Below, one piece after another: positions 17,019-52,509 of a stretch of 54,175 bases of DNA. The stretch comes from Caecitellus pseudoparvulus (Eukaryota; Protista; Bigyra: Bicosoecida): assembly GCA_965644315.1 (NCBI GenBank), contig CBFFRQ010000072.1:1-54175 (forward strand), read 5' to 3'. The number at the start of each line of letters is the position of its first letter. The stretch's first letter is position 1. Position numbers and translations under genes: made by a program. The notes beneath the pieces were generated by a model that was not told the origin of the DNA, made no database searches, and saw nothing but the letters and a program-made list of their open reading frames with translations.

Positions 17019-17119
17019 CGCTCCCTGCGGCCCCCCAAACGTGAATGCACACACAGCCCAGTTTTAGATTGCATGCACATGCTTGCATTGCGCTGGGAAT
17101 CTGATTCCACACTCCGACC

Positions 17120-24228: not shown

Positions 24229-24285
24229 ACGACGCGCCGCGCTTAATTCACTGTCCATGCATTGCGGAACACTGCACACCCGACG

Positions 24286-32031: not shown

Positions 32032-34245
32032 TCAAATCAAGTCTCTCAAGCTCTCAAACTTGGCTGCTTGCTGCCGCACCCTGTCTGGGATCCTGCGATC
32101 CCCAGTCAGGCCCAGCAGCTCACGCACAACATCTTTGCGTCCTCTGCTGCAGGCCCACCCGAAGCCAGCCTCACGTCCACCCCGATCAGCCGCATGCACA
32201 TCCACTTCTCGCGCCCCAGTAAGGCCTAACAACTCACGCACGATGTCTGTGTGGCCCTTCTTGCATGCCTCTCGGAAGGCGGCCTCAGGTCCATCCCAAG
32301 CCGCCGCATGCACATCCACTGCCCGCGCACCAGTGAGGGCCAACAGCTCACGCACGACATCTGTGTGACTCCTGAAGCATGCCCAACGGAAGGCGGCTTC
32401 TGGCCCTGTACTGCTAAAAAGTGATCCCCCCGGCCCTATCCCTTCCGCATGTACATTCACTGCCTCATCCCCCGTCAAAGCAAGCAGCTCACGCACCCTC
32501 GCAAGATTACCATCTTTGCACGCATTCACGAATGCAGCAGTGTTCACCTCATTGAATGTCTCCAGCTCAGGAGCTGGGTTAGACTCTGAAGTCAGTGCTG
32601 CCGCAGCTTCGGCTGCCTGCGCCTGACCTGCTGCGTCAACTGCCTGCTCTCCATCAAGCACACACCGCACCGCACTTTCCACACGCGACAAGCTCTTCAC
32701 TCCAAACCTTCTTGCCTCACACGCCATCGCATATGCACCCATGCAACAACCACTCCCTCCCCGCGCCAACACCTCCAACGCGCTCGTCAATGCATGCTCA
32801 CCACCCTCGCCGCTGCCCACGAAGCTCGACACAGCGCCCGATCCGCCACCCAACGCACCACCTGACACACCAAGCACCTCGTGGAGCACACCCAACACAC
32901 CCTCACCATCACCGCTACCACCGTCAGAGCGACCTGTGCCCCACACATCGCCACATGCACTCAACACAACCTCACACCCACCCCTCTCCAATGCGCCCAC
33001 CAGATCACCCACACTGCCACTCTCCACACCAACCACCACGAAGCTCCCCACACCCACACAACTCAGTCTCACTCCACACGCCTCCGCCACAGCACACACA
33101 CCCAGCACCCTCAGAGCCACGCGCTGCTTCACATCCTGCCCAACATTGCCCCACGCTTCATCCTCCAGGAACACCCTCAGCGGCCACCCCGCCTCACAGT
33201 GAACCTGCACTGTGACACTGCTCCTCTCGCCAACCGGCTCATCGGCATGGCCACCTCCACAGATGTGCGCCAAAGCGAGCTTGTGTGATTTTTGTGCCAT
33301 CCGCGGAAGTCCATGCGCGATGCGAGCCGCTTCGCCACGCTTCACAGCGCCAACACTCGTGGCAAGGGCTGTCGCACCCGCCTCCACACTCCCTGCCCAC
33401 TGTTCCACATCCCCAACTCCACCCACATCCTCATCCACGATCTCACTCCGTCCACTGTACACACTCACGTCCTTGCCGTTCAGGCACTCTAAGCCCATCG
33501 GCAAGTCCAGCCCACCCACAGCCTTCACCTTACGACCACTCATGACCGGTACACACCCCAACAGCTCACGCAGCTCCTGCACCGCACTCGCAGCACACTC
33601 CAAGTGCTTCGCAGCACTCTCACTCCTCAGATCACCTGCCGCCTCGCCTCGCAGCCAACCAGCCTGCTGCCGCATGCCAGCAAGAGCCGCCTCTGTCGCA
33701 GCCACGCCATCCGCATCATGTGTGACAGGGTCACCCTCACCAGCCACATCCACATCCGCCCCCGTGAAGCCTTGCCACCATCGCGTCAGATCAGCCAGCG
33801 CACCCTCCACGTTCACGCCGCTCCGCACACTGCCCCAAGCACCCACGATGGCGCCCCACAGTGCGTCACCCTCCGGCACTGCATCGGCACTCACGCCAGA
33901 CGCCGCCTGGTGCAGCACATCCACCGCGGCGAAGCACCGGAACGACAGGTACTGCAGCGCAGCACACACACCACCTCGCTCACGCTGCCCCGCCAACAGC
34001 CCAGCCTGCTCCAACAGCGCACTCCCTGCATCACGCAGTGCAGCTTCAAGCTCCACCAGGCTCATGGTCGATGGGGCATCGCCTGCAGCAGGTGCTTCGC
34101 CCCGCCCAATGGCTGCCAGTCCTCGCAGTGCTGGTCCGTGGTCCATGACGCTGCCCGGCAAGCACTTCATCTTGCCAAAGCATGCCGCCACCACCTCAGC
34201 CTGTGTATCGTGGACGCTTGCAGTTGGCGCTGCAACGCCCTCCAT
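32032..34245 (-). CDS. helical N-terminus + putative pseudokinase + 4 ankyrin repeats (paralogue A)
   Basis: Ankyrin-like units such as EAAFRxACxxGHTDxVRELLxLTG. ATG at 34245 (MEGVAAP), whose position is conserved in paralogue C. The kinase-like middle region is inferred from motif spacing. Confidence 0.8.
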   Translation of the reverse strand: MEGVAAPTASVHDTQAEVVAACFGKMKCLPGSVMDHGPALRGLAAIGRGEAPAAGDAPSTMSLVELEAALRDAGSALLEQAGLLAGQRERGGVCAALQYLSFRCFAAVDVLHQAASGVSADAVPEGDALWGAIVGAWGSVRSGVNVEGALADLTRWWQGFTGADVDVAGEGDPVTHDADGVAATEAALAGMRQQAGWLRGEAAGDLRSESAAKHLECAASAVQELRELLGCVPVMSGRKVKAVGGLDLPMGLECLNGKDVSVYSGRSEIVDEDVGGVGDVEQWAGSVEAGATALATSVGAVKRGEAARIAHGLPRMAQKSHKLALAHICGGGHADEPVGERSSVTVQVHCEAGWPLRVFLEDEAWGNVGQDVKQRVALRVLGVCAVAEACGVRLSCVGVGSFVVVGVESGSVGDLVGALERGGCEVVLSACGDVWGTGRSDGGSGDGEGVLGVLHEVLGVSGGALGGGSGAVSSFVGSGEGGEHALTSALEVLARGGSGCCMGAYAMACEARRFGVKSLSRVESAVRCVLDGEQAVDAAGQAQAAEAAAALTSESNPAPELETFNEVNTAAFVNACKDGNLARVRELLALTGDEAVNVHAEGIGPGGSLFSSTGPEAAFRWACFRSHTDVVRELLALTGARAVDVHAAAWDGPEAAFREACKKGHTDIVRELLGLTGAREVDVHAADRGGREAGFGWACSRGRKDVVRELLGLTGDRRIPDRVRQQAAKFESLRDLI

Positions 34246-34960
34246 GGCCTGACTTGCTGCTGCTGCCTGAGGCGTTGGGGGGGGGCAGGGCGCTGTGTGC
34301 TTTGGTGTGTGCTTCATGCTCGGTCGCACGTGCCGGCGAAAGCGGAGCGCCATGCCTACACCAACGCCCACGCACCATGGGGATGGATGGCAGGGGGTCA
34401 AGTCAGGCGTAGCTGTGCTGTGAAGCTAGATCCTGTGGAGTTGAGTTAGCGGCTAGGTGTGCTGGTGCGGCAGGGGGGAGGCGTTGTCGTGGTGGGCGTG
34501 TGTGGAGCAACTTCCGCACTTGCATCGGTGCACGCTCACCTGTGGCGGCCAGGGCAGGAGACAAGACGCCAAGCACGATGATACGCATGTGTGCAGTGAT
34601 ACCACAGGTGGGCGTGGGAAATAGTTGAGGCGCAGTTTGATGCCAGGTAACATGATGGTGTCCGGCTCCGCTCGATTGGGTGTCCGGCTGAAAGGCCGAA
34701 GGTCCCCTTGAGCCGGACACCGGTGTGTGGGAACTGTCAAAAGGAAAGTTCTTTGACCCCCTCAAGGGTCTAAGTACTTGTCATCTTCTGTTCACCCCCC
34801 CAGCGTTTTGTGAGGGAGAACCATCTTGTAGGGTCAATACGACAGGATCCTTGTCAGTTCGGCCACATCCCCAAGGTGTTGGAGGTCTACCACAAAGCGT
34901 CCAGTATTGAAGACTACACGACACATGGTGGGGGCAATAGATCTTCCCTGGTGCCTGTAC

Positions 34961-36505
34961 GTAAGGGCGTGCAGGAGGCGCAGGCGAGTGACGCTGCCTC
35001 GGCAGCCATGCGGCACGCCCAGCACCTGGAGGGAGACGCCGCAGCGGATGACAGCGATGGCAATGGTGATGGGAGCGACGTGGAGGATGCCGCAGCGGTA
35101 GTGGGGGGCAGTCTGGCGTTGCTGGGTGCAGCGAGTGGGTCGGGGCAGACCAGTGCGCCTGACACTGCACGTGCCGTGCCGAGTGGAGTGGCGGGTGGCG
35201 GCGGGGAGCTGGAGGGCGATGACAGTGATGCCAGCGGTGACGGGGATGTGGATAGGTGGAGGCGTGTGGTGACGCCTGCCGTGGCTGCGCGGCGTGCGGC
35301 TCAGGCGCAGGCCCGCAAGGCTGCCGCAGCCCTGCCGTGGGACATGGCGTATTACGCCTGCACCCTCCTGCAGCGTCTGTGGGGGTACATCCCCGTGTGC
35401 TGAGCGAGGCAGTGGCAGTGGCGTTGGTGGTACGCCTGCCAGCGGCACGAAGCGGCGGCGCAAGGCAGGGAAGGCGCACGAGTCAGTCGCCACCACTGCT
35501 GTCACGCTGCACAGTGCGCTGTGGACGTCTCTGGATGCTCTGACCGACATCATGGTGTTCCCCCACGCGTGGGTGCGGGCAGCAGCAGCCAGGTGTCTGG
35601 GCGCCGTCCTGAACACCGTGGCAGTGGCGAGCGTGGGGAGCTGCCCCCCACCGCCTGGCGTGGCGTCGTGGCTGGCTGGGGATGAGCGCCTGTTCGCCCT
35701 AGCCCGGGCAGCCTGTGTGCAGCTGGCGGACGGGGCGCTGAGCAGGGAGCAGGGCACGGCTCTGGCGTCGGTGCTGCTGTTCACGACGATAGGGCTGTTC
35801 GCCACGACGCCGCCCAGCTCCCGCAACACAATCCCGCCCCACCTCGCCCAGCGCACGGCTCGCTTGGCCGGCAAGTCCACCCTGCTCGTGGGTGGCGTGG
35901 AGGTGCAGCGGGACAGCCCACTCTCCACACACACTGCCCAAGATGACGGTGGCAGTGCGCGGGACCCGCTGTTCTGGCTGCTGCAGCGCCTCAGCAACAC
36001 GGCAGTGCAGCAGGGCGGGCCGGCGGCCACCACGGCGCTGAACGTGTTCGGGGCCATGGCTGGGCACTTGCCGCAGGTGGACTCACAGCGTTACGTGGTA
36101 CCGGTGGCACGGGCAGTGTTCCGCACTGTGCAGGCGGCAGAGCACGTGGCCAGCGACCTCCGCCTGGCCAATGCGCCATCCTGGTCAGAGCAAGGCCAGC
36201 AGGCGGCCGCTGCGTCAGTGACAGGCGCCTTGGCGTCGGAGGTCATGGAGGCGGTGCAGACTGCCATGGGCGCAGATGTGTTCCTGACGGCGTACAACGG
36301 CGAGCGGCGGGCCAGGGCGGCGGCGAAGGAGCGGCGAGCAAAGCAGGTGGTGCAGGAGGCGGTGATGGACCCGGCAGCAGCTGCAGCACGTCGGAGCCAA
36401 AAGGCACAGGCGAAGAAGCGCCACGGGGCGAAGCGAATGGACAAGGTGAAGGTGCTGCGAGGCGGTAATGAGAGTAGCAGGAAGCGGGGGAGGGAAAAGG
36501 TGTGA
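34961..36505 (+). pseudogene. UTP20: 3' fragment of UTP20 (SSU processome component 20), frameshifted; copy 1
   Basis: WDMAYY...LQRL, IMVFPHAWVRAAAARCLG and the C-terminal VFLTAYN...EAVMDPAAAAARRSQKAQAKKR match the end of UTP20. Only about 500 aa of a more than 2000-aa protein is present, with frame changes near 35390-35430. The left boundary is approximate. Confidence 0.65.
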
Positions 36506-36685
36506 GAGGCGTTGGTTTGTAAAGGGGTGTGCAATGCAGGTATGAGAGCGAGAGGTGTGTGGGGATGGTATTGGAGTGTTGGTGTGCCGTGGTTTGGGGT
36601 GGTGTGGTGTGGCATGTGCTTGTGTGGAGGTGGGGTGGGTGTCAGGTTCACCACATGTTGCATTGGTCTGAGCTTGAACCTGGGG

Positions 36686-39600
36686 TCAAATGAAGTCGCT
36701 CAGGGTCTCACACTTTGCGGCTTCCTGTCGCACGCTGTCTGGGATCCTGCGGTCGCCAGTGAGGGCCAACAGCTCACGCACGATGTCTATATGACCATTG
36801 GCGCATGCCAACCGGAAGGCAGCCTCAGGTCCTTTCCCATGCGCATCCACACCCACCTCCCGCGCACCGGTGAGAGCTAGCAGCTCTCGCACAATGTCGA
36901 GGTGGCCATTGGCACATGCCTCTCGGAAGGCGGCATCGGGTACGTCAGCCGCAGCAAAACCATTGCCCACAGAAACCATTCCTGCCGCGTGCACATCCAC
37001 TGCCCGCCTTCCAGTGAGGGCCAACAACTCACGCACGACGTCTATATGACCATTTTTGCATGCCGCTCGGAAGGCAGCCTCACGATAAGGGCTTCTGCCA
37101 AAATGCCCAGGCATGACTCCATCCTCCGCGTGCACATCCACTGCCCGCGTTCCAGTGAGGGCCAACAACTCACGCACGACGTCTATGTGGCCATTCTCGC
37201 ATGCCGCTCGGAAGGCAGCCTCACGATAAGGGCTTCTGCCAAAATGCCCAAGTACAACCCTATCCCCCGCGTGCACATCCACTGCCCGCGTTCCAGTGAG
37301 GGCCAACAACTCACGCACGACGTCTATGTGGCCATTCTCGCATGCCACTCGGAAGGCAGCCTCAGGTTTACCCCTATCTGCCGCGTGCACATCCACTGCT
37401 CGCGCCCCAGTCAGACTCAGCAGCTCACGCACAACATCTGTATGACCCATTTTGCATGCCGCTCGGAAGGCGGCTTCAGGCCCGTCATCATCCCCCACGT
37501 GCACATCCACTGCTCGCGCCCCAGTCAGACTCAGCAGCTCACGCACAACATCTGTATGACCCATTTTGCATGCCGCTCGGAAGGCGGCCTCAGGGCAAGG
37601 TCTTGTGTCAGAAAACCCACATCTCACTTTAACTTCATCAACCGCGTGCACATCCACTTCCCGGTGCCCAGTCAGGCTCAACAGCTCACGCACGATGTCA
37701 GTGTGGCCATTGGCACATGCCCATCGGAAGGCGGCCTCAGGTCCATCCCAATCCGCCGCATGCACATTCACTTCCCGCGCCCCGGAGAGACCTAGCAGGT
37801 CACGCACGATGTCAGTGTGGCCATTGGCACATGCCCATCGGAAGGCGGCCTCAGGCCCATCCTCATCCGCCGCGTGCACATCCACTTCCCGGTGCCCAGT
37901 CAGGCTCAACAGCTCACGCACGATGTCTGTTTGGCCATTGGCACATGCCCATCGGAAGGCGGCCTCAGGCCCATCCCCATCCGCTGCATGCACATCCACC
38001 TCCCGCGCCCCAGTCAGGCCCAGCAGCTCATGCACGATGTCTGTGTGGCCATTCTCGCATGCCGCTCCGAAGGCGGCCTCAGGCCCATCCTCATCCGCTG
38101 TGTGCACATCCACCGCCTCATCCCCCGTCAATGCAAGCAGCTCACGCACCCTCGCAAGATTACCATCCTTGCACGCATTCACGAATGCAGCAGAGTTCGC
38201 CTCATTGAATGTCTCCAGCTCAGGGGTTGGCTCCGACTGTGCAGCCGGTGCTGCCGCAGCTTCGGCCTCCTGCGCCTCACCTGCCGCAGCAGCTGCCTGC
38301 TCTCCATCAAGCAAGCTCCGCACAGCACTCTCCACACCTGACAGACGCTCCGATCCCCCCCCCCTTCCTTCACACGCCATCGCATACGCACCCATGCAGC
38401 AACCACTCCCTCCCCTCCCCAACACCTCCAACACGCTCGTCAGAGCATGCTCACCACCTTCACCACTGCTCACGAAAAGTGACCCAACGCCCGATCCGCC
38501 ACCCAACACATCACCTGCCACACCAAGCACCTCGTGCAGCACACCCAACACACCCTCACCACCACGGCAGCCGCCATCAGAGCGACTTGTGCCCCACACA
38601 CCGCCACACGCACTCAACACAACCTCACACCCACCCCTCTCCAATGCGCCCACCAGATCCCCCACACTGCCACTCCCCACGCCAACCACCACAAAGCTCC
38701 CCACACCCACACCATCCAGACTCATCCCACACGCCTCCGCCACAGCACACGCCCCCAATACACTCACAGCCACGCGCTGCTTCACATCCAGACCAACATC
38801 GCCCCACGCTTCATCCTCCAGGAACACCCTCAGCGGCGATCCCACCTCACACTGCACCTGCACTGTCACACTGCTCCTCTCACCAATCGGCTCTTCACCG
38901 CGACCACCGCCACACAGATGAAGCAATGCTGCTCTGCGTGGAGTCTGTGCCAACCGCGGCAGGCCATGCGCGATGCGGGTCGCTTCAACACGCTTCACCG
39001 CGCCAACACTCGTGGCAAGGGCCGTTGCACCCGCATCCACACTCCCTGCCCACTGTTCCACATCCCCAGCTCCACCCACATCCTCATCCACGATCTCACT
39101 CCGTCCACTGTACACACTCACGTCCTTGCCGTTCAGGCACTCCAAGCCGCCCGACAAGTCCAACCCTTGCACAGCCCTCACCTTCCGACCACTCATGACC
39201 GGCCCACACCCCAACAGCCCACGCAGCTCCTCCACCGCACTCGCAGCACTCTCCAAGTGCTTCGCAGCACTCTCACTCCTCAGATCACCTGCCGCCTCGC
39301 CTCGCAGCCAACCAGCCTGCTGCCGCATGCCAGCCAGAGCCGCATCCATCGCTGCCTCACCACCAGCATCATGCGTGATGGAGCCACCCTCACCAGCCAC
39401 ATCCACATCCGCCCCCGTGAAGCCTTGCCACCATCGCGTCAGATCAGCCAGCGCACCCTCCACGTTCACGCCGCTCCGCACACTGCCCCAAGCACCCACA
39501 ATGGCGCCCCACAGTGCGTCACCCTCCGGCACTGCATCGGCACTCACGCCAGACGCCGCCTGGTGCAGCACATCCACCGCGGCGAAGCACCGGAACGACA

Positions 39601-39898
39601 GGTACTGCAGCGCAGCACACACACCACCTCGCTCACGCTGCCCCGCCAACAGCCCAGCCTGCTCCAACAGCGCACTCCCTGCATCACGCAGTGCAGCTTC
39701 AAGCTCCACCAGGCTCATGGTCGATGGGGCATCGCCTGCAGCAGGTGCTTCGCCCCGCCCAATGGCTGCCAGTCCTCGCAGTGCTGGTCCGTGGTCCATG
39801 ACGCTGCCCGGCAAGCACTTCATCTTGCCAAAGCATGCCGCCACCACCTCAGCCTGTGTATCGTGGACGCTTGCAGTTGGCGCTGCAACGCCCTCCAT
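36686..39898 (-). CDS. helical N-terminus + putative pseudokinase + 12 ankyrin repeats (paralogue B, an A/C chimera)
   Basis: Intact ORF from the ATG at 39898. The 5' part is identical to paralogue A and the 3' part is near-identical to paralogue C. Confidence 0.85.
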   Translation of the reverse strand: MEGVAAPTASVHDTQAEVVAACFGKMKCLPGSVMDHGPALRGLAAIGRGEAPAAGDAPSTMSLVELEAALRDAGSALLEQAGLLAGQRERGGVCAALQYLSFRCFAAVDVLHQAASGVSADAVPEGDALWGAIVGAWGSVRSGVNVEGALADLTRWWQGFTGADVDVAGEGGSITHDAGGEAAMDAALAGMRQQAGWLRGEAAGDLRSESAAKHLESAASAVEELRGLLGCGPVMSGRKVRAVQGLDLSGGLECLNGKDVSVYSGRSEIVDEDVGGAGDVEQWAGSVDAGATALATSVGAVKRVEATRIAHGLPRLAQTPRRAALLHLCGGGRGEEPIGERSSVTVQVQCEVGSPLRVFLEDEAWGDVGLDVKQRVAVSVLGACAVAEACGMSLDGVGVGSFVVVGVGSGSVGDLVGALERGGCEVVLSACGGVWGTSRSDGGCRGGEGVLGVLHEVLGVAGDVLGGGSGVGSLFVSSGEGGEHALTSVLEVLGRGGSGCCMGAYAMACEGRGGGSERLSGVESAVRSLLDGEQAAAAAGEAQEAEAAAAPAAQSEPTPELETFNEANSAAFVNACKDGNLARVRELLALTGDEAVDVHTADEDGPEAAFGAACENGHTDIVHELLGLTGAREVDVHAADGDGPEAAFRWACANGQTDIVRELLSLTGHREVDVHAADEDGPEAAFRWACANGHTDIVRDLLGLSGAREVNVHAADWDGPEAAFRWACANGHTDIVRELLSLTGHREVDVHAVDEVKVRCGFSDTRPCPEAAFRAACKMGHTDVVRELLSLTGARAVDVHVGDDDGPEAAFRAACKMGHTDVVRELLSLTGARAVDVHAADRGKPEAAFRVACENGHIDVVRELLALTGTRAVDVHAGDRVVLGHFGRSPYREAAFRAACENGHIDVVRELLALTGTRAVDVHAEDGVMPGHFGRSPYREAAFRAACKNGHIDVVRELLALTGRRAVDVHAAGMVSVGNGFAAADVPDAAFREACANGHLDIVRELLALTGAREVGVDAHGKGPEAAFRLACANGHIDIVRELLALTGDRRIPDSVRQEAAKCETLSDFI
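36740..38200 (-). repeat. coding array of 12 ankyrin repeats (about 38-aa/114-bp core, some with 9-11 aa loop inserts)
   Basis: Repeated EAAFRxACxNGHxDxVRELLxLTGxRxVDVH. The same array recurs at about 42390-43850. Confidence 0.9.
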
Positions 39899-40613
39899 GG
39901 CCTGACTTGCTGCTGCTGCCTGAGGCGTTGGGGGGGGGCAGGGCGCTGTGTGCTTTGGTGTGTGCTTCATGCTCGGTCGCACGTGCCGGCGAAAGCGGAG
40001 CGCCATGCCTACACCAACGCCCACGCACCATGGGGATGGATGGCAGGGGGTCAAGTCAGGCGTAGCTGTGCTGTGAAGCTAGATCCTGTGGAGTTGAGTT
40101 AGCGGCTAGGTGTGCTGGTGCGGCAGGGGGGAGGCGTTGTCGTGGTGGGCGTGTGTGGAGCAACTTCCGCACTTGCATCGGTGCACGCTCACCTGTGGCG
40201 GCCAGGGCAGGAGACAAGACGCCAAGCACGATGATACGCATGTGTGCAGTGATACCACAGGTGGGCGTGGGAAATAGTTGAGGCGCAGTTTGATGCCAGG
40301 TAACATGATGGTGTCCGGCTCCGCTCGATTGGGTGTCCGGCTGAAAGGCCGAAGGTCCCCTTGAGCCGGACACCGGTGTGTGGGAACTGTCAAAAGGAAA
40401 GTTCTTTGACCCCCTCAAGGGTCTAAGTACTTGTCATCTTCTGTTCACCCCCCCAGCGTTTTGTGAGGGAGAACCATCTTGTAGGGTCAATACGACAGGA
40501 TCCTTGTCAGTTCGGCCACATCCCCAAGGTGTTGGAGGTCTACCACAAAGCGTCCAGTATTGAAGACTACACGACACATGGTGGGGGCAATAGATCTTCC
40601 CTGGTGCCTGTAC

Positions 40614-42158
40614 GTAAGGGCGTGCAGGAGGCGCAGGCGAGTGACGCTGCCTCGGCAGCCATGCGGCACGCCCAGCACCTGGAGGGAGACGCCGCAGCGG
40701 ATGACAGCGATGGCAATGGTGATGGGAGCGACGTGGAGGATGCCGCAGCGGTAGTGGGGGGCAGTCTGGCGTTGCTGGGTGCAGCGAGTGGGTCGGGGCA
40801 GACCAGTGCGCCTGACACTGCACGTGCCGTGCCGAGTGGAGTGGCGGGTGGCGGCGGGGAGCTGGAGGGCGATGACAGTGATGCCAGCGGTGACGGGGAT
40901 GTGGATAGGTGGAGGCGTGTGGTGACGCCTGCCGTGGCTGCGCGGCGTGCGGCTCAGGCGCAGGCCCGCAAGGCTGCCGCAGCCCTGCCGTGGGACATGG
41001 CGTATTACGCCTGCACCCTCCTGCAGCGTCTGTGGGGGTACATCCCCGTGTGCTGAGCGAGGCAGTGGCAGTGGCGTTGGTGGTACGCCTGCCAGCGGCA
41101 CGAAGCGGCGGCGCAAGGCAGGGAAGGCGCACGAGTCAGTCGCCACCACTGCTGTCACGCTGCACAGTGCGCTGTGGACGTCTCTGGATGCTCTGACCGA
41201 CATCATGGTGTTCCCCCACGCGTGGGTGCGGGCAGCAGCAGCCAGGTGTCTGGGCGCCGTCCTGAACACCGTGGCAGTGGCGAGCGTGGGGAGCTGCCCC
41301 CCACCGCCTGGCGTGGCGTCGTGGCTGGCTGGGGATGAGCGCCTGTTCGCCCTAGCCCGGGCAGCCTGTGTGCAGCTGGCGGACGGGGCGCTGAGCAGGG
41401 AGCAGGGCACGGCTCTGGCGTCGGTGCTGCTGTTCACGACGATAGGGCTGTTCGCCACGACGCCGCCCAGCTCCCGCAACACAATCCCGCCCCACCTCGC
41501 CCAGCGCACGGCTCGCTTGGCCGGCAAGTCCACCCTGCTCGTGGGTGGCGTGGAGGTGCAGCGGGACAGCCCACTCTCCACACACACTGCCCAAGATGAC
41601 GGTGGCAGTGCGCGGGACCCGCTGTTCTGGCTGCTGCAGCGCCTCAGCAACACGGCAGTGCAGCAGGGCGGGCCGGCGGCCACCACGGCGCTGAACGTGT
41701 TCGGGGCCATGGCTGGGCACTTGCCGCAGGTGGACTCACAGCGTTACGTGGTACCGGTGGCACGGGCAGTGTTCCGCACTGTGCAGGCGGCAGAGCACGT
41801 GGCCAGCGACCTCCGCCTGGCCAATGCGCCATCCTGGTCAGAGCAAGGCCAGCAGGCGGCCGCTGCGTCAGTGACAGGCGCCTTGGCGTCGGAGGTCATG
41901 GAGGCGGTGCAGACTGCCATGGGCGCAGATGTGTTCCTGACGGCGTACAACGGCGAGCGGCGGGCCAGGGCGGCGGCGAAGGAGCGGCGAGCAAAGCAGG
42001 TGGTGCAGGAGGCGGTGATGGACCCGGCAGCAGCTGCAGCACGTCGGAGCCAAAAGGCACAGGCGAAGAAGCGCCACGGGGCGAAGCGAATGGACAAGGT
42101 GAAGGTGCTGCGAGGCGGTAATGAGAGTAGCAGGAAGCGGGGGAGGGAAAAGGTGTGA
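40614..42158 (+). pseudogene. UTP20: 3' fragment of UTP20, frameshifted; copy 2
   Basis: Identical to 34961-36505, shifted by 5653 bp. Confidence 0.65.
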
Positions 42159-42338
42159 GAGGCGTTGGTTTGTAAAGGGGTGTGCAATGCAGGTATGAGA
42201 GCGAGAGGTGTGTGGGGATGGTATTGGAGTGTTGGTGTGCCGTGGTTTGGGGTGGTGTGGTGTGGCATGTGCTTGTGTGGAGGTGGGGTGGGTGTCAGGT
42301 TCACCACATGTTGCATTGGTCTGAGCTTGAACCTGGGG

Positions 42339-45256
42339 TCAAATGAAGTCGCTCAGGGTCTCACACTTTGCGGCTTCCTGTCGCACGCTGTCTGGGATCC
42401 TGCGGTCGCCAGTGAGGGCCAACAGCTCACGCACGATGTCTATATGACCATTGGCGCATGCCAACCGGAAGGCAGCCTCAGGTCCTTTCCCATGCGCATC
42501 CACACCCACCTCCCGCGCACCGGTGAGAGCTAGCAGCTCTCGCACAATGTCGAGGTGGCCATTGGCACATGCCTCTCGGAAGGCGGCATCGGGTACGTCA
42601 GCCGCAGCAAAACCATTGCCCACAGAAACCATTCCTGCCGCGTGCACATCCACTGCCCGCCTTCCAGTGAGGGCCAACAACTCACGCACGACGTCTATAT
42701 GACCATTTTTGCATGCCGCTCGGAAGGCAGCCTCACGATAAGGGCTTCTGCCAAAATGCCCAGGCATGACTCCATCCTCCGCGTGCACATCCACTGCCCG
42801 CGTTCCAGTGAGGGCCAACAACTCACGCACGACGTCTATGTGGCCATTCTCGCATGCCGCTCGGAAGGCAGCCTCACGATAAGGGCTTCTGCCAAAATGC
42901 CCAAGTACAACCCTATCCCCCGCGTGCACATCCACTGCCCGCGTTCCAGTGAGGGCCAACAACTCACGCACGACGTCTATGTGGCCATTCTCGCATGCCA
43001 CTCGGAAGGCAGCCTCAGGTTTACCCCTATCTGCCGCGTGCACATCCACTGCTCGCGCCCCAGTCAGACTCAGCAGCTCACGCACAACATCTGTATGACC
43101 CATTTTGCATGCCGCTCGGAAGGCGGCTTCAGGCCCGTCATCATCCCCCACGTGCACATCCACTGCTCGCGCCCCAGTCAGACTCAGCAGCTCACGCACA
43201 ACATCTGTATGACCCATTTTGCATGCCGCTCGGAAGGCGGCCTCAGGGCAAGGTCTTGTGTCAGAAAACCCACATCTCACTTTAACTTCATCAACCGCGT
43301 GCACATCCACTTCCCGGTGCCCAGTCAGGCTCAACAGCTCACGCACGATGTCAGTGTGGCCATTGGCACATGCCCATCGGAAGGCGGCCTCAGGTCCATC
43401 CCAATCCGCCGCATGCACATTCACTTCCCGCGCCCCGGAGAGACCTAGCAGGTCACGCACGATGTCAGTGTGGCCATTGGCACATGCCCATCGGAAGGCG
43501 GCCTCAGGCCCATCCTCATCCGCCGCGTGCACATCCACTTCCCGGTGCCCAGTCAGGCTCAACAGCTCACGCACGATGTCTGTTTGGCCATTGGCACATG
43601 CCCATCGGAAGGCGGCCTCAGGCCCATCCCCATCCGCTGCATGCACATCCACCTCCCGCGCCCCAGTCAGGCCCAGCAGCTCATGCACGATGTCTGTGTG
43701 GCCATTCTCGCATGCCGCTCCGAAGGCGGCCTCAGGCCCATCCTCATCCGCTGTGTGCACATCCACCGCCTCATCCCCCGTCAATGCAAGCAGCTCACGC
43801 ACCCTCGCAAGATTACCATCCTTGCACGCATTCACGAATGCAGCAGAGTTCGCCTCATTGAATGTCTCCAGCTCAGGGGTTGGCTCCGACTGTGCAGCCG
43901 GTGCTGCCGCAGCTTCGGCCTCCTGCGCCTCACCTGCCGCAGCAGCTGCCTGCTCTCCATCAAGCAAGCTCCGCACAGCACTCTCCACACCTGACAGACG
44001 CTCCGATCCCCCCCCCCTTCCTTCACACGCCATCGCATACGCACCCATGCAGCAACCACTCCCTCCCCTCCCCAACACCTCCAACACGCTCGTCAGAGCA
44101 TGCTCACCACCTTCACCACTGCTCACGAAAAGTGACCCAACGCCCGATCCGCCACCCAACACATCACCTGCCACACCAAGCACCTCGTGCAGCACACCCA
44201 ACACACCCTCACCACCACGGCAGCCGCCATCAGAGCGACTTGTGCCCCACACACCGCCACACGCACTCAACACAACCTCACACCCACCCCCATCCAGTGC
44301 GCCCACCAGATCCCCCACACTGCCACTCCCCACGCCAACCACCACAAAGCTCCCCACACCCACACCATCCAGACTCATCCCACACGCCTCCGCCACAGCA
44401 CACGCCCCCAATACACTCACAGCCACGCGCTGCTTCACATCCAGACCAACATCGCCCCACGCTTCATCCTCCAGGAACACCCTCAGCGGCGATCCCACCT
44501 CACACTGCACCTGCACTGTCACACTGCTCCTCTCACCAATCGGCTCTTCACCGCGACCACCGCCACACAGATGAAGCAATGCTGCTCTGCGTGGAGTCTG
44601 TGCCAACCGCGGCAGGCCATGCGCGATGCGGGTCGCTTCAACACGCTTCACCGCGCCAACACTCGTGGCAAGGGCCGTTGCACCCGCATCCACACTCCCT
44701 GCCCACTGTTCCACATCCCCAGCTCCACCCACATCCTCATCCACGATCTCACTCCGTCCACTGTACACACTCACGTCCTTGCCGTTCAGGCACTCCAAGC
44801 CGCCCGACAAGTCCAACCCTTGCACAGCCCTCACCTTCCGACCACTCATGACCGGCCCACACCCCAACAGCCCACGCAGCTCCTCCACCGCACTCGCAGC
44901 ACTCTCCAAGTGCTTCGCAGCACTCTCACTCCTCAGATCACCTGCCGCCTCGCCTCGCAGCCAACCAGCCTGCTGCCGCATGCCAGCCAGAGCCGCATCC
45001 ATCGCTGCCTCACCACCAGCATCATGCGTGATGGAGCCACCCTCACCAGCCACATCCACATCCGCCCCCGTGAAGCCTTGCCACCATCGCGTCAGATCAG
45101 CCAGCGCACCCTCCACGTTCACGCCGCTCCGCACACTGCCCCAAGCACCCACAATGGCGCCCCACAGTGCGTCACCCTCCGGCACTGCATCGGCACTCAC
45201 GCCAGACGCCGCCTGATGCAGCACATCCACCGCGGCGAAGCACCGGAACGACAGGT
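42339..45256 (-). pseudogene. paralogue C, 3' part (pseudokinase-like region + 12 ankyrin repeats), cut off from its 5' end by the retrotransposon
   Basis: Homology to paralogue B stops exactly at the GGT at 45254-45256. The reading frame stays open into the element's B2/A2 repeats (ORF 42339-45467). Confidence 0.8.
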
Positions 45257-45405
45257 TCCCTCGTGTTGGTGCGTTGTGCGTGGCAATCGAAATGCATTGA
45301 ACTGGGCCCGCCTCGAGGCCGTCCCCTCCCCCCTCTATGCCAGCGGCCACCAGGGCTCGCTGCATCTCTTGGGGGAGGGGACGCCTCCTTGCGGCACCCG
45401 CCAAT
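45254..45405 (-). repeat. split direct repeat B2 (152 bp)
   Basis: Identical to 45592-45743. Confidence 0.95.
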
Positions 45406-45417
45406 CGAGAAAAAGAA

Positions 45418-45594
45418 AAAAAAAAGGAAAGAGAGTGACGAGGCCGGCTAATGACTGGTTTTGTCATGCCCGGTCCTGCCGTCGTCTACTCTGCGTTGGG
45501 GCGGCGGGGGACAATTGTGCCACTAGCGTGGGACTGCCCGCCGCCCCTCCTGCCGGGAAACATGGTTGCCGGCTGGGGTGCCGGCAACCTCGGT
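45418..45594 (-). repeat. split direct repeat A2 (about 177 bp)
   Basis: Identical to 50899-51075. The adjoining A-tract is longer here than in A1. Confidence 0.95.
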
Positions 45595-45743
45595 TCCCTC
45601 GTGTTGGTGCGTTGTGCGTGGCAATCGAAATGCATTGAACTGGGCCCGCCTCGAGGCCGTCCCCTCCCCCCTCTATGCCAGCGGCCACCAGGGCTCGCTG
45701 CATCTCTTGGGGGAGGGGACGCCTCCTTGCGGCACCCGCCAAT
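45592..45743 (-). repeat. split direct repeat B1 (152 bp)
   Basis: Identical to 45254-45405 and lies about 30 bp after the YR stop codon. Confidence 0.95.
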
Positions 45744-45774
45744 ACTTTTCAATGCTTGCTTCCTCCCCTGGGTG

Positions 45775-46644
45775 TCATGGCCTCGTGCCACAGCCTCGCC
45801 CCCTCCCCCCCTGGGTGTAGTATCGTGCCCGGGTGGGGGAGCCAGCCGCCCAGCCCGCCGCGTGCTCCACCAAGACGTCGGGGGCCCGGCCTGTCCAGAA
45901 CATATTGCCCCCGGGTCTCAGGTGGGCCAAGGACACGCCCGCTACAGCCTTCAGGATGCCTTGCAGGCTGAGCCACGCCCACCTTGGGAGCAGGCTTCCC
46001 CGCTTGTCCCGGGCCTGCTCCCGGAGGCGGTCGAAGGCCCCCGCCCACTCGGCCTGGCGCACCACCTGGATGTGGCGGTTTGCACTCAGGTGCGTTTTAT
46101 CCGTGACCCTGGCCTCCACCCACTGCAGGGGGCCCGCCCGCCCGAAGTGCAACTCCTCCCATCGCAGGCCCCGGAGCTCTCCCGGCCTGCACATGCCATG
46201 AAAGCCGATGTAGATAGCTGCGGCGGCAGTTGGGGCATGCCTCCCGAGGTGTGGCCCGTCCCATGCCCGCTTCATGGCCTCCATGACTTGTTCTTTGCTG
46301 ATAGGGCGGCGGTGTTGCTCCCCTCTCCCTCGGTGGAGCCGGCGGATTGCCCGGCAGATGCTGCCGACTGTGAGCCCCAGCGGGGCTAGCGACGGGATTG
46401 GCAGGCCCAGATACCTAAAACCACCGACCCATTGCGCCAGGATCTGCTTCGCCCGATGGGGGGCCCATCTGCCTGCGGCCACGCCGCCCGTTAAGATGCC
46501 CACCATGGTCCGCGCCCTGTCCCGGGGTGCTGGAGCGGCCCTGATCAGGCCAGCAACCGCGCGAACGTACTTGACCACCGTCCCCTTTGCCAGCCTATGT
46601 TGGTGAATCCTGCTGATCGGGGACGCGGGGATGGCCCTGATCAT
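45775..46644 (-). CDS. tyrosine recombinase of the retrotransposon
   Basis: N-terminal LAKGTVVKY, GFHGMCRPGEL (catalytic R), AHLRPGG, HAAGW and RARYY (Tyr nucleophile). Overlaps the end of the RT-RNase H ORF by 50 nt. Confidence 0.88.
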   Translation of the reverse strand: MIRAIPASPISRIHQHRLAKGTVVKYVRAVAGLIRAAPAPRDRARTMVGILTGGVAAGRWAPHRAKQILAQWVGGFRYLGLPIPSLAPLGLTVGSICRAIRRLHRGRGEQHRRPISKEQVMEAMKRAWDGPHLGRHAPTAAAAIYIGFHGMCRPGELRGLRWEELHFGRAGPLQWVEARVTDKTHLSANRHIQVVRQAEWAGAFDRLREQARDKRGSLLPRWAWLSLQGILKAVAGVSLAHLRPGGNMFWTGRAPDVLVEHAAGWAAGSPTRARYYTQGGRGRGCGTRP

Positions 46645-48808
46645 CTGCCAGAAGGTCTGCTTCCTTATCCAGAGTGTGTCTGTGCAGGGCGACGGAGAGT
46701 TGAGCTGAGTGAATCCACGCGGTGCCCGCCCCGGCCTTTCCCGACGGCCCTACGTCTAGGGACACATCATGCCACCGCTCAGCGGCGCTGCTTCCCCCTG
46801 CTGATACCTCCAGCTCGGCTGGTTGCCCTGGCGGGAGGCCGAGCGCTGCCGGTGTGCTGCTATCCACCCTTTCGGGGTGGCTGAGGGCGTCCGCCCGCCA
46901 ATTCAGGCTCCTCGGGATCCACCGAGGCGCCAAGTGGACGTCCAAAACGCGGGAAACCCGCTCGAGGACCCCGCAGACGCGCGTGAGTTCACGGCTGTGC
47001 TTGCTGTACCCTCGTCGCGCCAGCGCCACCGCTGCCTGGCTGTCCGCAGCTAGGCATAGCAGCAGCGGCCCCGGCTCGGGAAAAACATGCCGCGCCATTG
47101 CCATAGCCAAGGCGATTGCGTACAGCTCCAGCATCGTGGAGGCTCCCACGAGCTCCTCGCCCGGGGCTGTGCCGGGGATGCGCATGGACGCGTACCAAGC
47201 GGAGTCTGTGCGTTCTCCTGGCCCTGCCCACCTCGACACTGTTGCCCCCAGCCCGCCTTCCCCCGACGCGTCGCACGAGCCAAAGAGGGCGGCGCGCCAC
47301 CTGCTTGACAGTGGGGAGAGCGGGCGCATCGGGCCCGTCGATAACGGCCCACCGAGGGCCTCAAGGAGGGTCCGCAGGGCCCCGTGCGACGCCGGGGGGA
47401 CAGGCACGAGAGCGCCGGGGGGGCCGACGCGGTACTTGTGTGTGCGCATGGTGTCGTACAAGAGCGACAGCGTTTGTTTTGCGTGGGGCACCACGGCCGA
47501 CAGGCCGTGCAAGCGCCCTGTGACCGCGGCGAAAACGCGCTTGGGGATGGTGGAGCAAGCGCCGAGGCGATTAAGGACCGCGGCCAGCTGCCACCGCAGC
47601 TGAGTTCGTTTGGCTTGAGGACACTCAAGGTACACCCCACACGGGGCACACCTGACCACCATCCCCAAGTACTGAACGACGCGCTGTGGCCCTTGCGTCT
47701 TCTTGCGCGACACCCGGAAGCCCACGTCCTCGAACAGTTGAGTTATCTTGGGCACGATCGATGGCCGTGGCCCCAACGTAGCTCCCCCAAGCCCGACGTC
47801 GTCTACGTACACAACCACATGCCCTGCTGGGAACGCCGCTTCGATCTTGGCGCCCAGAAGTCCAGAAAAAAAGCAGAAAATGGCCCCGGCCGGGCTGTAC
47901 CCGAAGGCCATCCGAAGCATGCGGAAGGCTGGCCTGCCCTGGGCGAGCATGGTGAACAGTCCGGCGCCCGACGGAGCGATGGGGATGGCCGTGTACCCTG
48001 CTTCCACGTCCAGGACAACACAGTCCGAGTTCGGCGGGAGGCGCAGCGCCCAGCTCTCCAGCGTGGGGTAGTGGAATGGGGGGCTCACTGAGGCCTGGTT
48101 GACGGCTGCCAGATCGTACACCACCCGCTGCTTGGCCCGGAACAGGCGGCTCGGGCGGGCGGGCGCGCGGGAAGAGCTGGCGGCCTGCACCGCCTCGCCT
48201 GGGTTCGCAGCAGCCCACTGTCGCAGAGCTTCGTCGCTGACGCCCGGCTGGGGGGCCCATGTCGTGACAACGAAGGCAGAAGCGGCTGGCCCCCCATCTT
48301 TCGGTGCTGCTGCAGCTGCTGGGGGTGACCGGCTGCAGCACGCGCGCAGCCGCGAAGGCGTCATAGGCCGCTGCCACCGCCCGCTCGTCGTGCGGCTGCA
48401 GCACGTATGCCGAGGACGGGGATGCCGCTGCCGGGGGCGGCGGAACAGCAGCCAAGCGGGGTCCCACCCGCGCAGCGTGACCACGGTGAGCAGTCGCATG
48501 GCTGCGCACCGCTCAAGCTGCCGTAATCTGGAAGTGGTCTCGCCGCATGCGGGACACACGTCAGCGTGGGCCTCCTGGCAACCCCAGTATGAGACCACGG
48601 GGTGGGGGCCCCAGTCCAAGCCCCCACGCAAGATGTCCTCGAAGAGCCCCGGTGGAGTCCAACAACGGTCCCCATGCAGCTGCTGGACCATTGATTCGAT
48701 GAGCACGGCCATGGCGCGGTGGTCTGTCGAGAGCGGGGCGGCAGCCCTCCACTCCACGGGCACGGCCCGGTACCCCGTGGTCGCTCTCACCACCGCGCTC
48801 CGGCCCAC
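46595..48808 (-). CDS. reverse transcriptase + RNase H (DIRS/Ngaro type)
   Basis: RT motifs KQRVVYDL..VN, LDVEAGY, MAFGYSPA, VYVDDV and QYLG. RNase H motifs CDASGEGG, ELYAI, ADSQAAV and WIPRSLNWRADALS. Confidence 0.92.
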   Translation of the reverse strand: MGRSAVVRATTGYRAVPVEWRAAAPLSTDHRAMAVLIESMVQQLHGDRCWTPPGLFEDILRGGLDWGPHPVVSYWGCQEAHADVCPACGETTSRLRQLERCAAMRLLTVVTLRGWDPAWLLFRRPRQRHPRPRHTCCSRTTSGRWQRPMTPSRLRACCSRSPPAAAAAPKDGGPAASAFVVTTWAPQPGVSDEALRQWAAANPGEAVQAASSSRAPARPSRLFRAKQRVVYDLAAVNQASVSPPFHYPTLESWALRLPPNSDCVVLDVEAGYTAIPIAPSGAGLFTMLAQGRPAFRMLRMAFGYSPAGAIFCFFSGLLGAKIEAAFPAGHVVVYVDDVGLGGATLGPRPSIVPKITQLFEDVGFRVSRKKTQGPQRVVQYLGMVVRCAPCGVYLECPQAKRTQLRWQLAAVLNRLGACSTIPKRVFAAVTGRLHGLSAVVPHAKQTLSLLYDTMRTHKYRVGPPGALVPVPPASHGALRTLLEALGGPLSTGPMRPLSPLSSRWRAALFGSCDASGEGGLGATVSRWAGPGERTDSAWYASMRIPGTAPGEELVGASTMLELYAIALAMAMARHVFPEPGPLLLCLAADSQAAVALARRGYSKHSRELTRVCGVLERVSRVLDVHLAPRWIPRSLNWRADALSHPERVDSSTPAALGLPPGQPAELEVSAGGSSAAERWHDVSLDVGPSGKAGAGTAWIHSAQLSVALHRHTLDKEADLLADDQGHPRVPDQQDSPT

Positions 48809-48811
48809 CTC

Positions 48812-50230
48812 CTAGAGGCTGAGAGCTGCCTCCACCATGGCCGTGGTGACAGCGCGGGGCTGCATGCGCCGCTGGAAGTCACGTCCCTTGGATGCCACCT
48901 TCCGCTCCCACTGGCGCACCAGCATGGCCACTGCCTGCGCCTGGGTAAGTTCTGCGGGCTTACCTCCGACTGTGTGGGTCCGGCGCAGGTGGGCCACATG
49001 CTGGGCCAGGCGTGGGCAGGATGCCAGCGACCGGCGCCGCCGGTCGGATCCGACGCACCCGGGGCACCACACGAATGTGCTCGGGTCGTCCTGCCGGTAC
49101 AGCCCCGCGGGAGGGCCACGAGCGGGGGTTTGCGCCGGGCCGCCCCCCGCACCTGGCATCGGTGTGGCGGCGGCCCCGGCCGCCCATGCCTCGCGCGCCA
49201 GCGAGCTGGCCACCAGTGCTTGCCCCGTCGCCGACGCCATCATGACAATGGTGGCGTTAGTGCGGAACGTGGCCACCCAGGAGGCCCACGTCAGCTGGGC
49301 CCATCGCCTGCGCTGGCCTTCGGGCAACGCAGCGGCGGTCTGCGCCACGGCCCGCACTGCGATTGTGATCAGGAGTGCGCACGCCATGGCTCGGCACAGG
49401 CCCCGCTGGTCTGCCAGGGCGGGCACCTCGGACGCCCACTTCCACCAGAACGCTCGGAGGGAGCGGTGGAGGTCGTCGGAAGGCGCCGTCAGCAAGTCCC
49501 TGGTCATCGCAGCAAGCCACCAAGCGCCCCCACGGTTGCCCAGCATGTGGCATGCCGACAGGGCACCCGCCCCAGTTACTGCCACTAGATGGGTTGGGTC
49601 AACTGTAACTTCCACCCTCCCTTGCACCAGGCGTACAGCAGTCACTACGTCCATAGCGTCGTCCATCATGACCGACGCGGACGGCGGGGCTACCTCATCG
49701 CCGGGGGCTGTGAGCCAGGACGGGTCGCCGGGAGCGGGCACGCGGGGCGAGTGGGGGGGGAGCTGGCGGGACAGGAACGTACCTGACGGCACTGGGCCCG
49801 TTGCTGCGGGCACCTCTCGTGCAGCAGCCTCAGCCATCTCGACAGCCACCGTGGTCAAGGCGTCTGTGGTCCCCGCAGCGAAAACTGCCCCCAAGGCTGA
49901 CAGGCGGTCCCGGGCCACCGCCGACGAGGGGTGTGCGGTCGGCCCAATGACCCGCAGCGCGCCTACAGTGACCAGTACCTCGTCGGCTGGCGACGACCGA
50001 CCGCTGTTCTCCCCCATGTGACCGAAAACAGCCGACCCGCCTTCGGGGTGGACTGCCGGCGAGGCTCCGCCGCCCCACGGGGGAGGGGGGCTGCGGGCTA
50101 TAGGCCGCCCTGTGCCTCTTGGAGGCCGGGGGGTGACCCGGGGCCGCCGCACGGGGCTGTAACCGGGCGGCATCCGGTGTGGTGCCCGGGAAAACGGGAA
50201 AGAACGGGGCGCCGGCATCGTCGTCGCCAA
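48812..50230 (-). CDS. gag-like ORF2 of the retrotransposon with a Cys/His cluster
   Basis: 472-codon ORF lying upstream of and in frame with pol. It carries CPGC...C...H..H near the C-terminus. The gag assignment is by position only. Confidence 0.55.
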   Translation of the reverse strand: MATTMPAPRSFPFSRAPHRMPPGYSPVRRPRVTPRPPRGTGRPIARSPPPPWGGGASPAVHPEGGSAVFGHMGENSGRSSPADEVLVTVGALRVIGPTAHPSSAVARDRLSALGAVFAAGTTDALTTVAVEMAEAAAREVPAATGPVPSGTFLSRQLPPHSPRVPAPGDPSWLTAPGDEVAPPSASVMMDDAMDVVTAVRLVQGRVEVTVDPTHLVAVTGAGALSACHMLGNRGGAWWLAAMTRDLLTAPSDDLHRSLRAFWWKWASEVPALADQRGLCRAMACALLITIAVRAVAQTAAALPEGQRRRWAQLTWASWVATFRTNATIVMMASATGQALVASSLAREAWAAGAAATPMPGAGGGPAQTPARGPPAGLYRQDDPSTFVWCPGCVGSDRRRRSLASCPRLAQHVAHLRRTHTVGGKPAELTQAQAVAMLVRQWERKVASKGRDFQRRMQPRAVTTAMVEAALSL

Positions 50231-50894
50231 AGTCGTCGTCGCCCGCCAGCGCGGCCTCCAGGACCCGCTGCAAATGCATCACGATGTCGTCGGGGGTGAG
50301 GTCGGGGGGAATACCGTTGAGTCTGCACCATGCGGCGAAGCGCCGTGGAGGCCAAGCGGAGAGGGCGTACGGCGATGTCTCCTCCGTTGCCAAGCCCACG
50401 TAGAACTGCAGCTGCACGGCGACGTCCTCGCTCGGCACCGTCGCTCCCCTCTGCAGGAACCACGTAAGCACTGTGGCGGGATCTTGCGGGAGGTCGCCTG
50501 CGACTGCGTCCGGCTGGGTCGGGCGCGGGGGTAGGTGCGGGCCGTAGGGCGTGCCACTGCTCGCACCGCGCGGACGGGTTCGCTTCGTGCCGTGCCCCCG
50601 TGGTGAGCCGCCTGCGCGATGAGGGGCACCGTCAGCGGGGAGGCGGAAAGCTCTGCCCGCAATGAGGGATCGCATGCGATCTGCCCGGAATCCCTCGGGC
50701 ACCTCCCGGAGGCGCCAAGCGGCCTCCATCTTACCAAAATCCTCAGAATCCGCCCACTTCAGCCAGTACTCGAACTCCTGCTCCGTTATGAGCGCCTTGG
50801 CTTGCTTGGCGGAGTTGACAGACATCATTTTGTCGTGGATGTCCTCCCAGCTTCCGCCCTCCGTGTCGCTGGAAGCTGGATCATCCGATGCCAT
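49830..50894 (-). CDS. ORF1 of the retrotransposon (possibly the N-terminal half of gag, joined to ORF2 by a frameshift)
   Basis: The ATG (MASDDP) comes right after the U-tract of repeat A1. The sequence reads as globular for about 220 aa, then overlaps ORF2 in another frame. Confidence 0.55.
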   Translation of the reverse strand: MASDDPASSDTEGGSWEDIHDKMMSVNSAKQAKALITEQEFEYWLKWADSEDFGKMEAAWRLREVPEGFRADRMRSLIAGRAFRLPADGAPHRAGGSPRGHGTKRTRPRGASSGTPYGPHLPPRPTQPDAVAGDLPQDPATVLTWFLQRGATVPSEDVAVQLQFYVGLATEETSPYALSAWPPRRFAAWCRLNGIPPDLTPDDIVMHLQRVLEAALAGDDDFGDDDAGAPFFPVFPGTTPDAARLQPRAAAPGHPPASKRHRAAYSPQPPSPVGRRSLAGSPPRRRVGCFRSHGGEQRSVVASRRGTGHCRRAAGHWADRTPLVGGGPGPPVSLGGSFRCGDHRRLDHGGCRDG

Positions 50895-50898
50895 CTCG

Positions 50899-51075
50899 AA
50901 AAAAAAGGAAAGAGAGTGACGAGGCCGGCTAATGACTGGTTTTGTCATGCCCGGTCCTGCCGTCGTCTACTCTGCGTTGGGGCGGCGGGGGACAATTGTG
51001 CCACTAGCGTGGGACTGCCCGCCGCCCCTCCTGCCGGGAAACATGGTTGCCGGCTGGGGTGCCGGCAACCTCGGT
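50899..51075 (-). repeat. split direct repeat A1 (5' terminus of the element)
   Basis: Identical to A2 and ends at the GGT at 51073-51075, where host sequence resumes. Confidence 0.95.
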
Positions 51076-51370
51076 ACTCAAGCGCAGCACACACACCACC
51101 TCGCTCATGCTGCCCCGCCAACAGCCCAGCCTGCTCCAACAGCGCACTCCCTGCATCACGCAGTGCAGCTTCCAGCTCCACCAGGCTCATGGTCGATGGG
51201 GCATCGCCTGCAGCAGGTGCTTCGCCCCGCCCAATGGCTGCCAGTCCTCGCAGTGCTGGTCCGTGGTCCATGACGCTGCCCGGCAAGCACTTCATCTTGC
51301 CCAAGCATGCCGCCACCAAGTCAGCCTGTGTCTTGGAGAAGCTTGCTGTGGGTGCTGCGCTGCCGTCCAT
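51073..51370 (-). pseudogene. paralogue C, 5' part (about 99 codons)
   Basis: MDGSAAPTASFSKTQADLVAACLGKMKCLPGS...CAALEY is a diverged homologue of MEGVAAPTASVHDTQAEVVAACFGK...CAALQY. Upstream 51370-51793 is homologous to 34245-34674. Confidence 0.85.
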
Positions 51371-52509
51371 GGTTTGGCCTGTTGCTGCTGCCTGTGGTGT
51401 TGGGGAGGGGCAGGGCGCAGTGTGCTGTGGTGTGTGGGCGACACGCTCTGGCGCAAGTACTGGCGATAGCGGGGCGCCGTGCTCAAGCCCACGCACCATG
51501 ACGAGAAATGGCAGGGGGTCTGATTAGGCGTGGGTGTGCTATGTAGCTTGCTCCTGTGATGTGCAGGCAGTGGGCGCGTGTGTTGGGGTGCCGAGGAGGC
51601 GTTGTTGCAGTTAGTGTGTAAGGACGCAACTTCCGCACTTGCAACTGAGCACACCTACCTGTGGCGGCCAAAAATGAATACAAAGCGGCATGCACACTGA
51701 TGCGCAGATGTACAGTGACGTTACAGGCGTGTACGTGAAATAGTTGAGGTGCAGTTTGGGTGCAGGCAACGTGAAAGTGTCCGGCTCCGCTCGCCGCCTG
51801 CATCTCAATCGCGCTACAGAGTAGACAGGTCTCTTCTCCCAGGATTTGAAGCACGTTGAACTTTCTCATCAACGTCGTCCGGGCGCACTGCTTTGCCGCA
51901 CCCTCTGCCATGATGCAGTGGGAGGGGCGAGACTTGACCGAAGCCTTTTGTGGCAACTTCTTCTTCGCAGCCGAATCTGTTCACGTTCAAGAGGCTATTG
52001 TCGTGGAATTCAAGCCCCAAATGCAAAGCATTGAGTTGGTGCATAGATCATATTGTGGCAATTGACCTTGCTTGAAACCCAGCGCTGACAAGCTGAAGGA
52101 GGAAAGCCATCGCCTTGGACGTGGGCGGCAAGGAGGATGTCTCCTTGTAGAGAGCCCCCTCTACAATCGGGTGACCGGCATCTCAGCAAACACTGCACGG
52201 AACTAGTTTCCCGGACACCCATGAAATCCCAGACTGCGAGCACCAAGACCCCCTGGCACAGTGCTCGTCTTTTGCACAGGCGGGGCAGCGCGCTCGGCCA
52301 GAATCTGCGCCCAACACCGGGCGACGCGTCACCAGTGCCTGGACGAGCTTTTACGTCGACTTTGCCAGGAAAAGGGAGCTCAGACAGCATTTCTCTTCCC
52401 TTTGATACACTGTTCGTTTGCTTGGCACTTCTTTGCTCGCCGGCGGGCAGCTTGAGGACTGCGTTTGCGCTGGGAGTGTCTCAGCAAGTTCCGCACCACG
52501 CCGGCAAGC

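Follow-up and report, generated by a model that had tools for sequence, protein, structure and literature searches.

A large lineage-specific family of pseudokinase proteins with diversified ankyrin tails in Caecitellus pseudoparvulus, a candidate repertoire of recognition proteins

RNase L has an ankyrin sensor, a pseudokinase and a helical KEN nuclease, in that order, and it is a single conserved gene with a fixed small ligand. RIPK4/ANKK1, ILK and Legionella AnkK also join a kinase or pseudokinase fold to ankyrin repeats. MLKL combines a helical executioner domain with a pseudokinase. Finally, fungal NLRs with conserved ANK, TPR or WD repeats have near-identical repeats, variable repeat number, exchangeable repeat types and positive selection on the inner helix and hairpin, at about five sites (PMC4986451). 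Here we describe a protein family found in a 54,175-nt stretch of DNA (hereafter, the window) from the bicosoecid Caecitellus pseudoparvulus (GenBank assembly GCA_965644315.1, contig CBFFRQ010000072.1). Three tandem paralogues, A, B and C, lie on the minus strand within 32032-51370, and each encodes an N-terminal helical domain, a pseudokinase and ankyrin repeats. By its sequence matches, the family has about 77-80 members in this genome, not three.

The family resembles a fungal NLR repertoire, with all four of the features listed above, but it is not an NLR: it has no NACHT or NB-ARC domain and carries a pseudokinase in its place, its N-terminal domain is no known effector domain by Pfam or fold search, and Pfam scans of the module (the helical domain plus the pseudokinase) found no P-loop family. 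By the one test that we ran, it is not MLKL either. The helical domain does not match the four-helix bundle and is acidic, the kinase lacks the beta3 Lys and its fold score is tied among many kinases, and there are some 80 paralogues with ankyrin or Sel1 tails, which MLKL lacks. As in RNase L, the three kinds of parts are in one chain, but their order is reversed, and the helical domain has no KEN ribonuclease match in Pfam or among the listed fold matches and no conserved His in the paralogue comparison. RIPK4/ANKK1, ILK and AnkK are each encoded by a single gene and are not known to have this helical domain or hypervariability on the repeat face, and searches of the module in PDB and Pfam found no sequence similarity to kinase-ankyrin proteins. 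The papers searched, few of them from subscription journals, contain no description of a protist, stramenopile or Cafeteria family with ankyrin repeats and a pseudokinase, or of an MLKL family there, which agrees with the first impression that the architecture was undescribed. The parts are of known kinds. Neither the databases nor the papers that we searched contained this combination of them, the helical fold or the repertoire.

The helical domain and the pseudokinase

Paralogue A, which is intact, shows the order of the parts. Residue numbers are counted from the Met at 34245 of copy A (the stop is at 32032), and all protein analyses use the main exon from this second Met.

32032-34378, minus strand: paralogue A; predicted one-codon exon 34376-34378, intron 34267-34375, main exon 32032-34266
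33556-34209, minus strand: N-terminal helical domain of A, residues 13-230
32698-33555, minus strand: pseudokinase domain of A, residues 231-516
32035-32541, minus strand: ankyrin array of A, 4 repeats

In the structure model, the central domain is a pseudokinase: a kinase-like fold with its catalytic motifs gone. It is bilobal, with a five-strand N-lobe, alphaC, a hinge and a helical C-lobe. An initial annotation, made by eye, had traced the kinase subdomain order, and all five motifs that it quoted (LNGKDVSVY, EAARIAHGL and EVVLSACG among them) are present in copy A, in the correct order and on the named elements of a confident model. Its claim that every catalytic motif is lost holds across 51 sequences: with positions assigned by secondary-structure order, the beta3 position (264) is K in none, the catalytic position (396) is D in 3, every sequence has S or G at the DFG position (429), and the HRD and DFG strings are absent. 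Loss of the beta3 Lys, the HRD Asp and the DFG Asp is the criterion for a pseudokinase (PMC8141879). Other polar residues around the N-lobe and hinge are strictly conserved (E305, R308, R315, Q318, H327, Q347, C350, E351, D362 and E388).

Sequence searches of Pfam and PDB with the module, single or as a 51-sequence profile, found nothing, and an Atlas feature search of the kinase part returned only unnamed clusters and weak kinase/APH rows. MLKL ranked first among the fold matches of the kinase domain, but it was tied with other kinases, many of them tyrosine or tyrosine-kinase-like (TK/TKL), and the full-length Foldseek match to MLKL was weak (E 0.033, template-modelling score 0.21). No other result pointed to MLKL.

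The first ~230 residues had been proposed to be helical, and the model agrees: residues 13-230 form six helices and a two-helix hairpin. Folded alone, this domain reaches a predicted local distance difference test score (pLDDT) of 86; the predicted template-modelling score (pTM) is 0.83 for the whole module versus 0.66 for the helical part alone. The proposed resemblance to an MLKL-, HeLo- or RPW8-type bundle was not borne out, as none of these is among the listed fold matches, and searches of PDB, BFVD and the Atlas features gave nothing significant for the model. The domain is confidently modelled, and its fold has no known counterpart in the databases searched. It is acidic (net charge −15) and has no hydrophobic N-terminal helix. 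The first 12 residues of the protein are unconserved, with a ratio of nonsynonymous to synonymous substitution (dN/dS) of about 1 among 24 young paralogues, and one subfamily places the module behind 1,100 other residues.

A diversified repertoire

The rest of the module is under purifying selection, not evolving neutrally: across the same 24 paralogues, the helical domain has a dN/dS of 0.37 and the kinase core has values of 0.32-0.35. Neutral or dead repeats are ruled out by dN/dS of 0.3-0.4 and by the open frames. The ankyrin repeats evolve differently. In 114 distinct 38-residue repeats, the variable positions are 6, 9 and 10 (first helix) and 35 and 36 (hairpin), with 9-14 amino acids at each. 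At these five positions, which were chosen by entropy, nonsynonymous difference (pN) is 0.555 versus 0.289 for synonymous difference (pS); in the framework, pN is 0.073 versus a pS of 0.273 (pN/pS about 0.27). Judging by these patterns, the ankyrin binding face (inner helix and hairpin) is under diversifying selection. Five such positions are under selection in a Podospora NLR (PMC4986451).

With the N-cap repeat included, the ankyrin repeats number 4 in A and 12 each in B and C, as first described. Across the family, the tails range from 1 to >12 ankyrin repeats through ankyrin with many Sel1 repeats, Sel1 alone, a coiled coil or proline-alanine repeats to none. The ankyrin (and Sel1) tails vary and evolve in the manner of the sensors that they had been taken for. 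In several divergent members, at most a single degenerate repeat is left. The 38-residue ankyrin repeat also forms stand-alone arrays on many contigs, in frames of 300-700 codons without the module, and a first look gave 1,369 candidates.

In the genome (30.6 Mb, about 65% GC), a 562-residue query gave 77 matches and the kinase part gave 80, a few of them pieces of split genes. About 45 members form a young clade at 74-87% identity; the rest go down to about 30%. A profile search of 1.84 billion representatives with HMMER found 19 strong matches, all within the family, and one distant protein (P0023) that joins the module to Sel1 repeats without ankyrin. Eight metagenome proteins nest among the genome's own paralogues in a quick tree, and marine metagenomes are among the sources of the relatives. 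In three relatives (P0017, L031:1-2157 and L033:4823-7000), the module ends a 1,600-residue protein whose ~1,100 preceding residues match no Pfam family, and there is no ankyrin tail. Because there are only these matches and the metagenome proteins nest among the paralogues, the family is, at the sensitivity of HMMER, confined to this lineage.

The young clade has spread by DNA-level duplication of a ~5 kb unit from a probable founder locus on contig C43, because its genes are accompanied by the UTP20 3' end in some 35 decaying copies; the retained intron agrees with this. On C43, one family gene and the full UTP20 gene (a 4,210-codon frame) are tail-to-tail neighbours (G000:C43:616151-619991, where G000 is the genome), and this family gene is probably the founder copy.

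Tandem copies, retrotransposon insertions and neighbours

The other features of the locus are as follows.

36686-40031, minus strand: paralogue B, intact frame, chimera; main part 36686-39898
about 36689-38194, minus strand: ankyrin array of B, 12 repeats
39501-39562, no strand: A-to-C switch interval in B, from unequal crossover of a 5,653-bp duplication
42339-45253, minus strand: 3' piece of paralogue C (codon 99 onward, pseudokinase, 12 ankyrin repeats)
51076-51499, minus strand: 5' piece of C, with codons 1-98 from the Met at 51370, preceded by an intron (51392-51496) and a predicted one-codon exon (51497-51499)
34946-36505, plus strand: UTP20 3' fragment, which belongs to the unit duplicated in the young clade
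40599-42158, plus strand: second, identical UTP20 3' fragment
45254-51075, minus strand: Ngaro-type tyrosine-recombinase (YR) retrotransposon, 5,822 bp, which splits C at codon 98/99 (layout as in PMC8547959)
50899-51075, 45592-45743, 45418-45594 and 45254-45405: its repeats A1, B1, A2 and B2
46595-48808 and 45775-46644: its reverse transcriptase (RT) and its YR-like open reading frame (ORF)

The stretch 33848-39603 recurs at 39501-45256, a tandem duplication of 5,653 bp. Copy B appears to be a chimera produced by unequal crossover, with its 5' end from A and its 3' part from C, because its first 98 codons are identical to those of A while its later part is 99.9% identical to C (4 differences in 2,915 bases). 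Its frame is intact at the place where that of C is broken. Three of the 4 differences match A, which makes an assembly artefact unlikely. Inspection by eye found nothing convincing as a Helitron-like end of the duplicated unit.

In 20 of 22 paralogues, a GT donor comes directly after an ATG, and the intron of 97-111 nt (109 nt in A) ends in an in-frame CAG acceptor that lies 21 bases ahead of the second Met, so the true protein probably starts 8 residues earlier, via a one-codon exon. This conserved exon and its intron of ~105 nt occupy 34267-34378 and 51392-51499, and a further conserved donor lies ~165 nt upstream, in the 5' untranslated region.

The A (177-bp) and B (152-bp) repeats of the Ngaro element are each 100% identical, in the order A1-ORFs-B1A2B2. 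The reverse transcriptase matches RVT_1 (E 1.7e-7); the other frame shows HxxR and a late Tyr by eye but has no Pfam match. Both ends of the element share the three bases ACC with its B1-A2 junction and with the uninterrupted site of copies A and B, as would be expected for recombinase-mediated integration. The A2/B2 repeats also give the 3' piece of C an in-frame ATG, which yields a 1,042-codon ORF at 42339-45467 that lacks the first 98 helical-domain codons.

By coordinates, there are 27 near-identical young copies of the element, some located from one end only. Five of these interrupt family genes (at codons about 45, 98, 101 and 428 and in one ankyrin array) and four lie within 1 kb of family genes, where 0.5-0.7 would be expected by chance (P about 1e-8).

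Copies in or near family genes (all G000): the window copy 45254-51075; C21:14445-20271; C79:~7980-13800 and 16198-22021; C142:1942-7760 and 19945-25600; C158:3405; C22:47053; C71:~55600-61429

Insertions at different codons and in both orientations rule out a single target codon. One gene whose match begins at residue 95 (C21:24622) has no element alongside. The enrichment is explained as well by tolerance in redundant arrays as by targeting. The Ngaro elements of Cafeteria burkhardae are alike in the A1-ORFs-B1A2B2 layout, the length of about 6 kb and the RT and YR-like ORFs; they reportedly prefer virophage DNA, and in the part of that paper cited here, enrichment in host genes of the present kind is not mentioned (PMC8547959).

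Elsewhere in the window, a 1,035-codon ORF (21121-24228) with a weak C-type lectin match contains a near-perfect 36-bp tandem repeat (22796-23507, about 20 copies), and a 2,875-codon ORF (8391-17018) has only a weak Laminin_G_3 match, near its end. Proteins filed under Symbiodinium sp. KB8 (P0030 and P0016) include one with 94% identity to the product of the AATF gene (27058-28698) and one member of the family, which is probably contamination of the KB8 assembly; that assembly also contains mavirus-like virophage genes (PMC10120064). Taken with the Ngaro elements and the marine metagenome sources, these matches suggest that the host is a stramenopile flagellate of the Cafeteria type. On a deep-sea metagenome contig (L051:1-1411), the neighbour of a family gene joins faint ankyrin matches to a histone deacetylase domain.

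Possible functions

On balance, we lean towards the view that the family is a lineage-specific repertoire of intracellular recognition proteins. Its evolutionary pattern suggests an immune role. The concave ankyrin face would bind variable, probably foreign, proteins from a virus, bacterial prey or a parasite, and binding would cluster or re-shape the receptors. The dead kinase would serve as a platform that needs no nucleotide, where NLRs have their NACHT/NB-ARC switch, and the helical domain, packed on the kinase, would relay the signal via a fixed host partner rather than by punching membranes. More tentatively, and with the odds against so specific a scheme, innate immunity in this stramenopile flagellate might rely on receptors of one chain each: a naturally diversified ankyrin library would sense proteins of viruses or bacteria, a pseudokinase would stand in for the NOD switch, and the new-fold helical domain would trigger defence or cell death. 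In the portion of the literature cited here, virus detection by protists is described as largely open (PMC10945749).

Several points weigh against the recognition reading. The kinase motifs were placed by the order of secondary-structure elements. The entropy-based choice of sites somewhat inflates pN at the variable positions, and the repeats are related by recombination and are not independent. As several divergent members have hardly any repeat, not all members are sensors; and as hundreds of stand-alone arrays exist, the repeats diversify with or without the module. Also, the evidence for expression is weak: contigs of run X3, whose RNA nature is a tool's guess, cover gene bodies only and end at 34248, and one 246-nt piece differs from copy A at one position.

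The initial annotation read these genes as one-chain sensor-switch-effector proteins, and much of this stands: the kinase fold, the lost motifs, the helical N-terminus, the sensor-like tails and a large family under purifying selection. The MLKL-type executioner bundle does not. The corresponding mechanism, in which a ligand frees the helical bundle from the pseudokinase and the bundle oligomerises, permeabilises membranes and kills the infected cell, is improbable.

A slightly less probable alternative is that these proteins are decoys or inhibitors: the dead kinase would bait or block an invader's kinases or kinase-targeting effectors, the ankyrin tail would target variable proteins, and there would be no signalling of their own. 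Scaffold or switch roles that need no catalysis are common among pseudokinases (PMC8141879), and the higher pTM of the whole module fits a rigid single piece. But a bait should diversify, and here it is the ankyrin face that varies and the kinase part that is conserved; in addition, the conserved helical domain is left without explanation.

About as improbable, or a little more so, is a system that acts inside the species, for self/non-self recognition (of mates or clones) or in a selfish, toxin-antidote or drive-like conflict, or a set of regulators of the cell's own mobile elements, rather than one directed at invaders from outside. Fungal receptors with the same repeat evolution control allorecognition, in the portions cited of PMC4986451 and PMC13449251, and the arrays are rich in young Ngaro insertions. 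However, tolerant, redundant arrays are equally expected to collect insertions, and there is no linked partner gene: apart from the family gene itself, the duplicated unit contains just a decaying piece of UTP20.

Least probable is an atypical enzyme whose active site has been re-built, as happened in kinase-like proteins that AMPylate or glutamylate, and which would modify targets picked by the ankyrin tail: the strictly kept polar residues from E305 to E388 would suit it, but no Lys, Asp or Asn is conserved at the beta3, catalytic-loop or DFG positions, where such enzymes need them to bind metal and phosphates.

If the recognition reading is true, then this lineage would have arrived independently at the sensor-switch-output design of NLRs, using a dead kinase for the switch. 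And if the host is Cafeteria-like, with cultured giant viruses and virophages, then this 80-gene family of candidate receptors, with five variable positions per repeat, would be directly testable.
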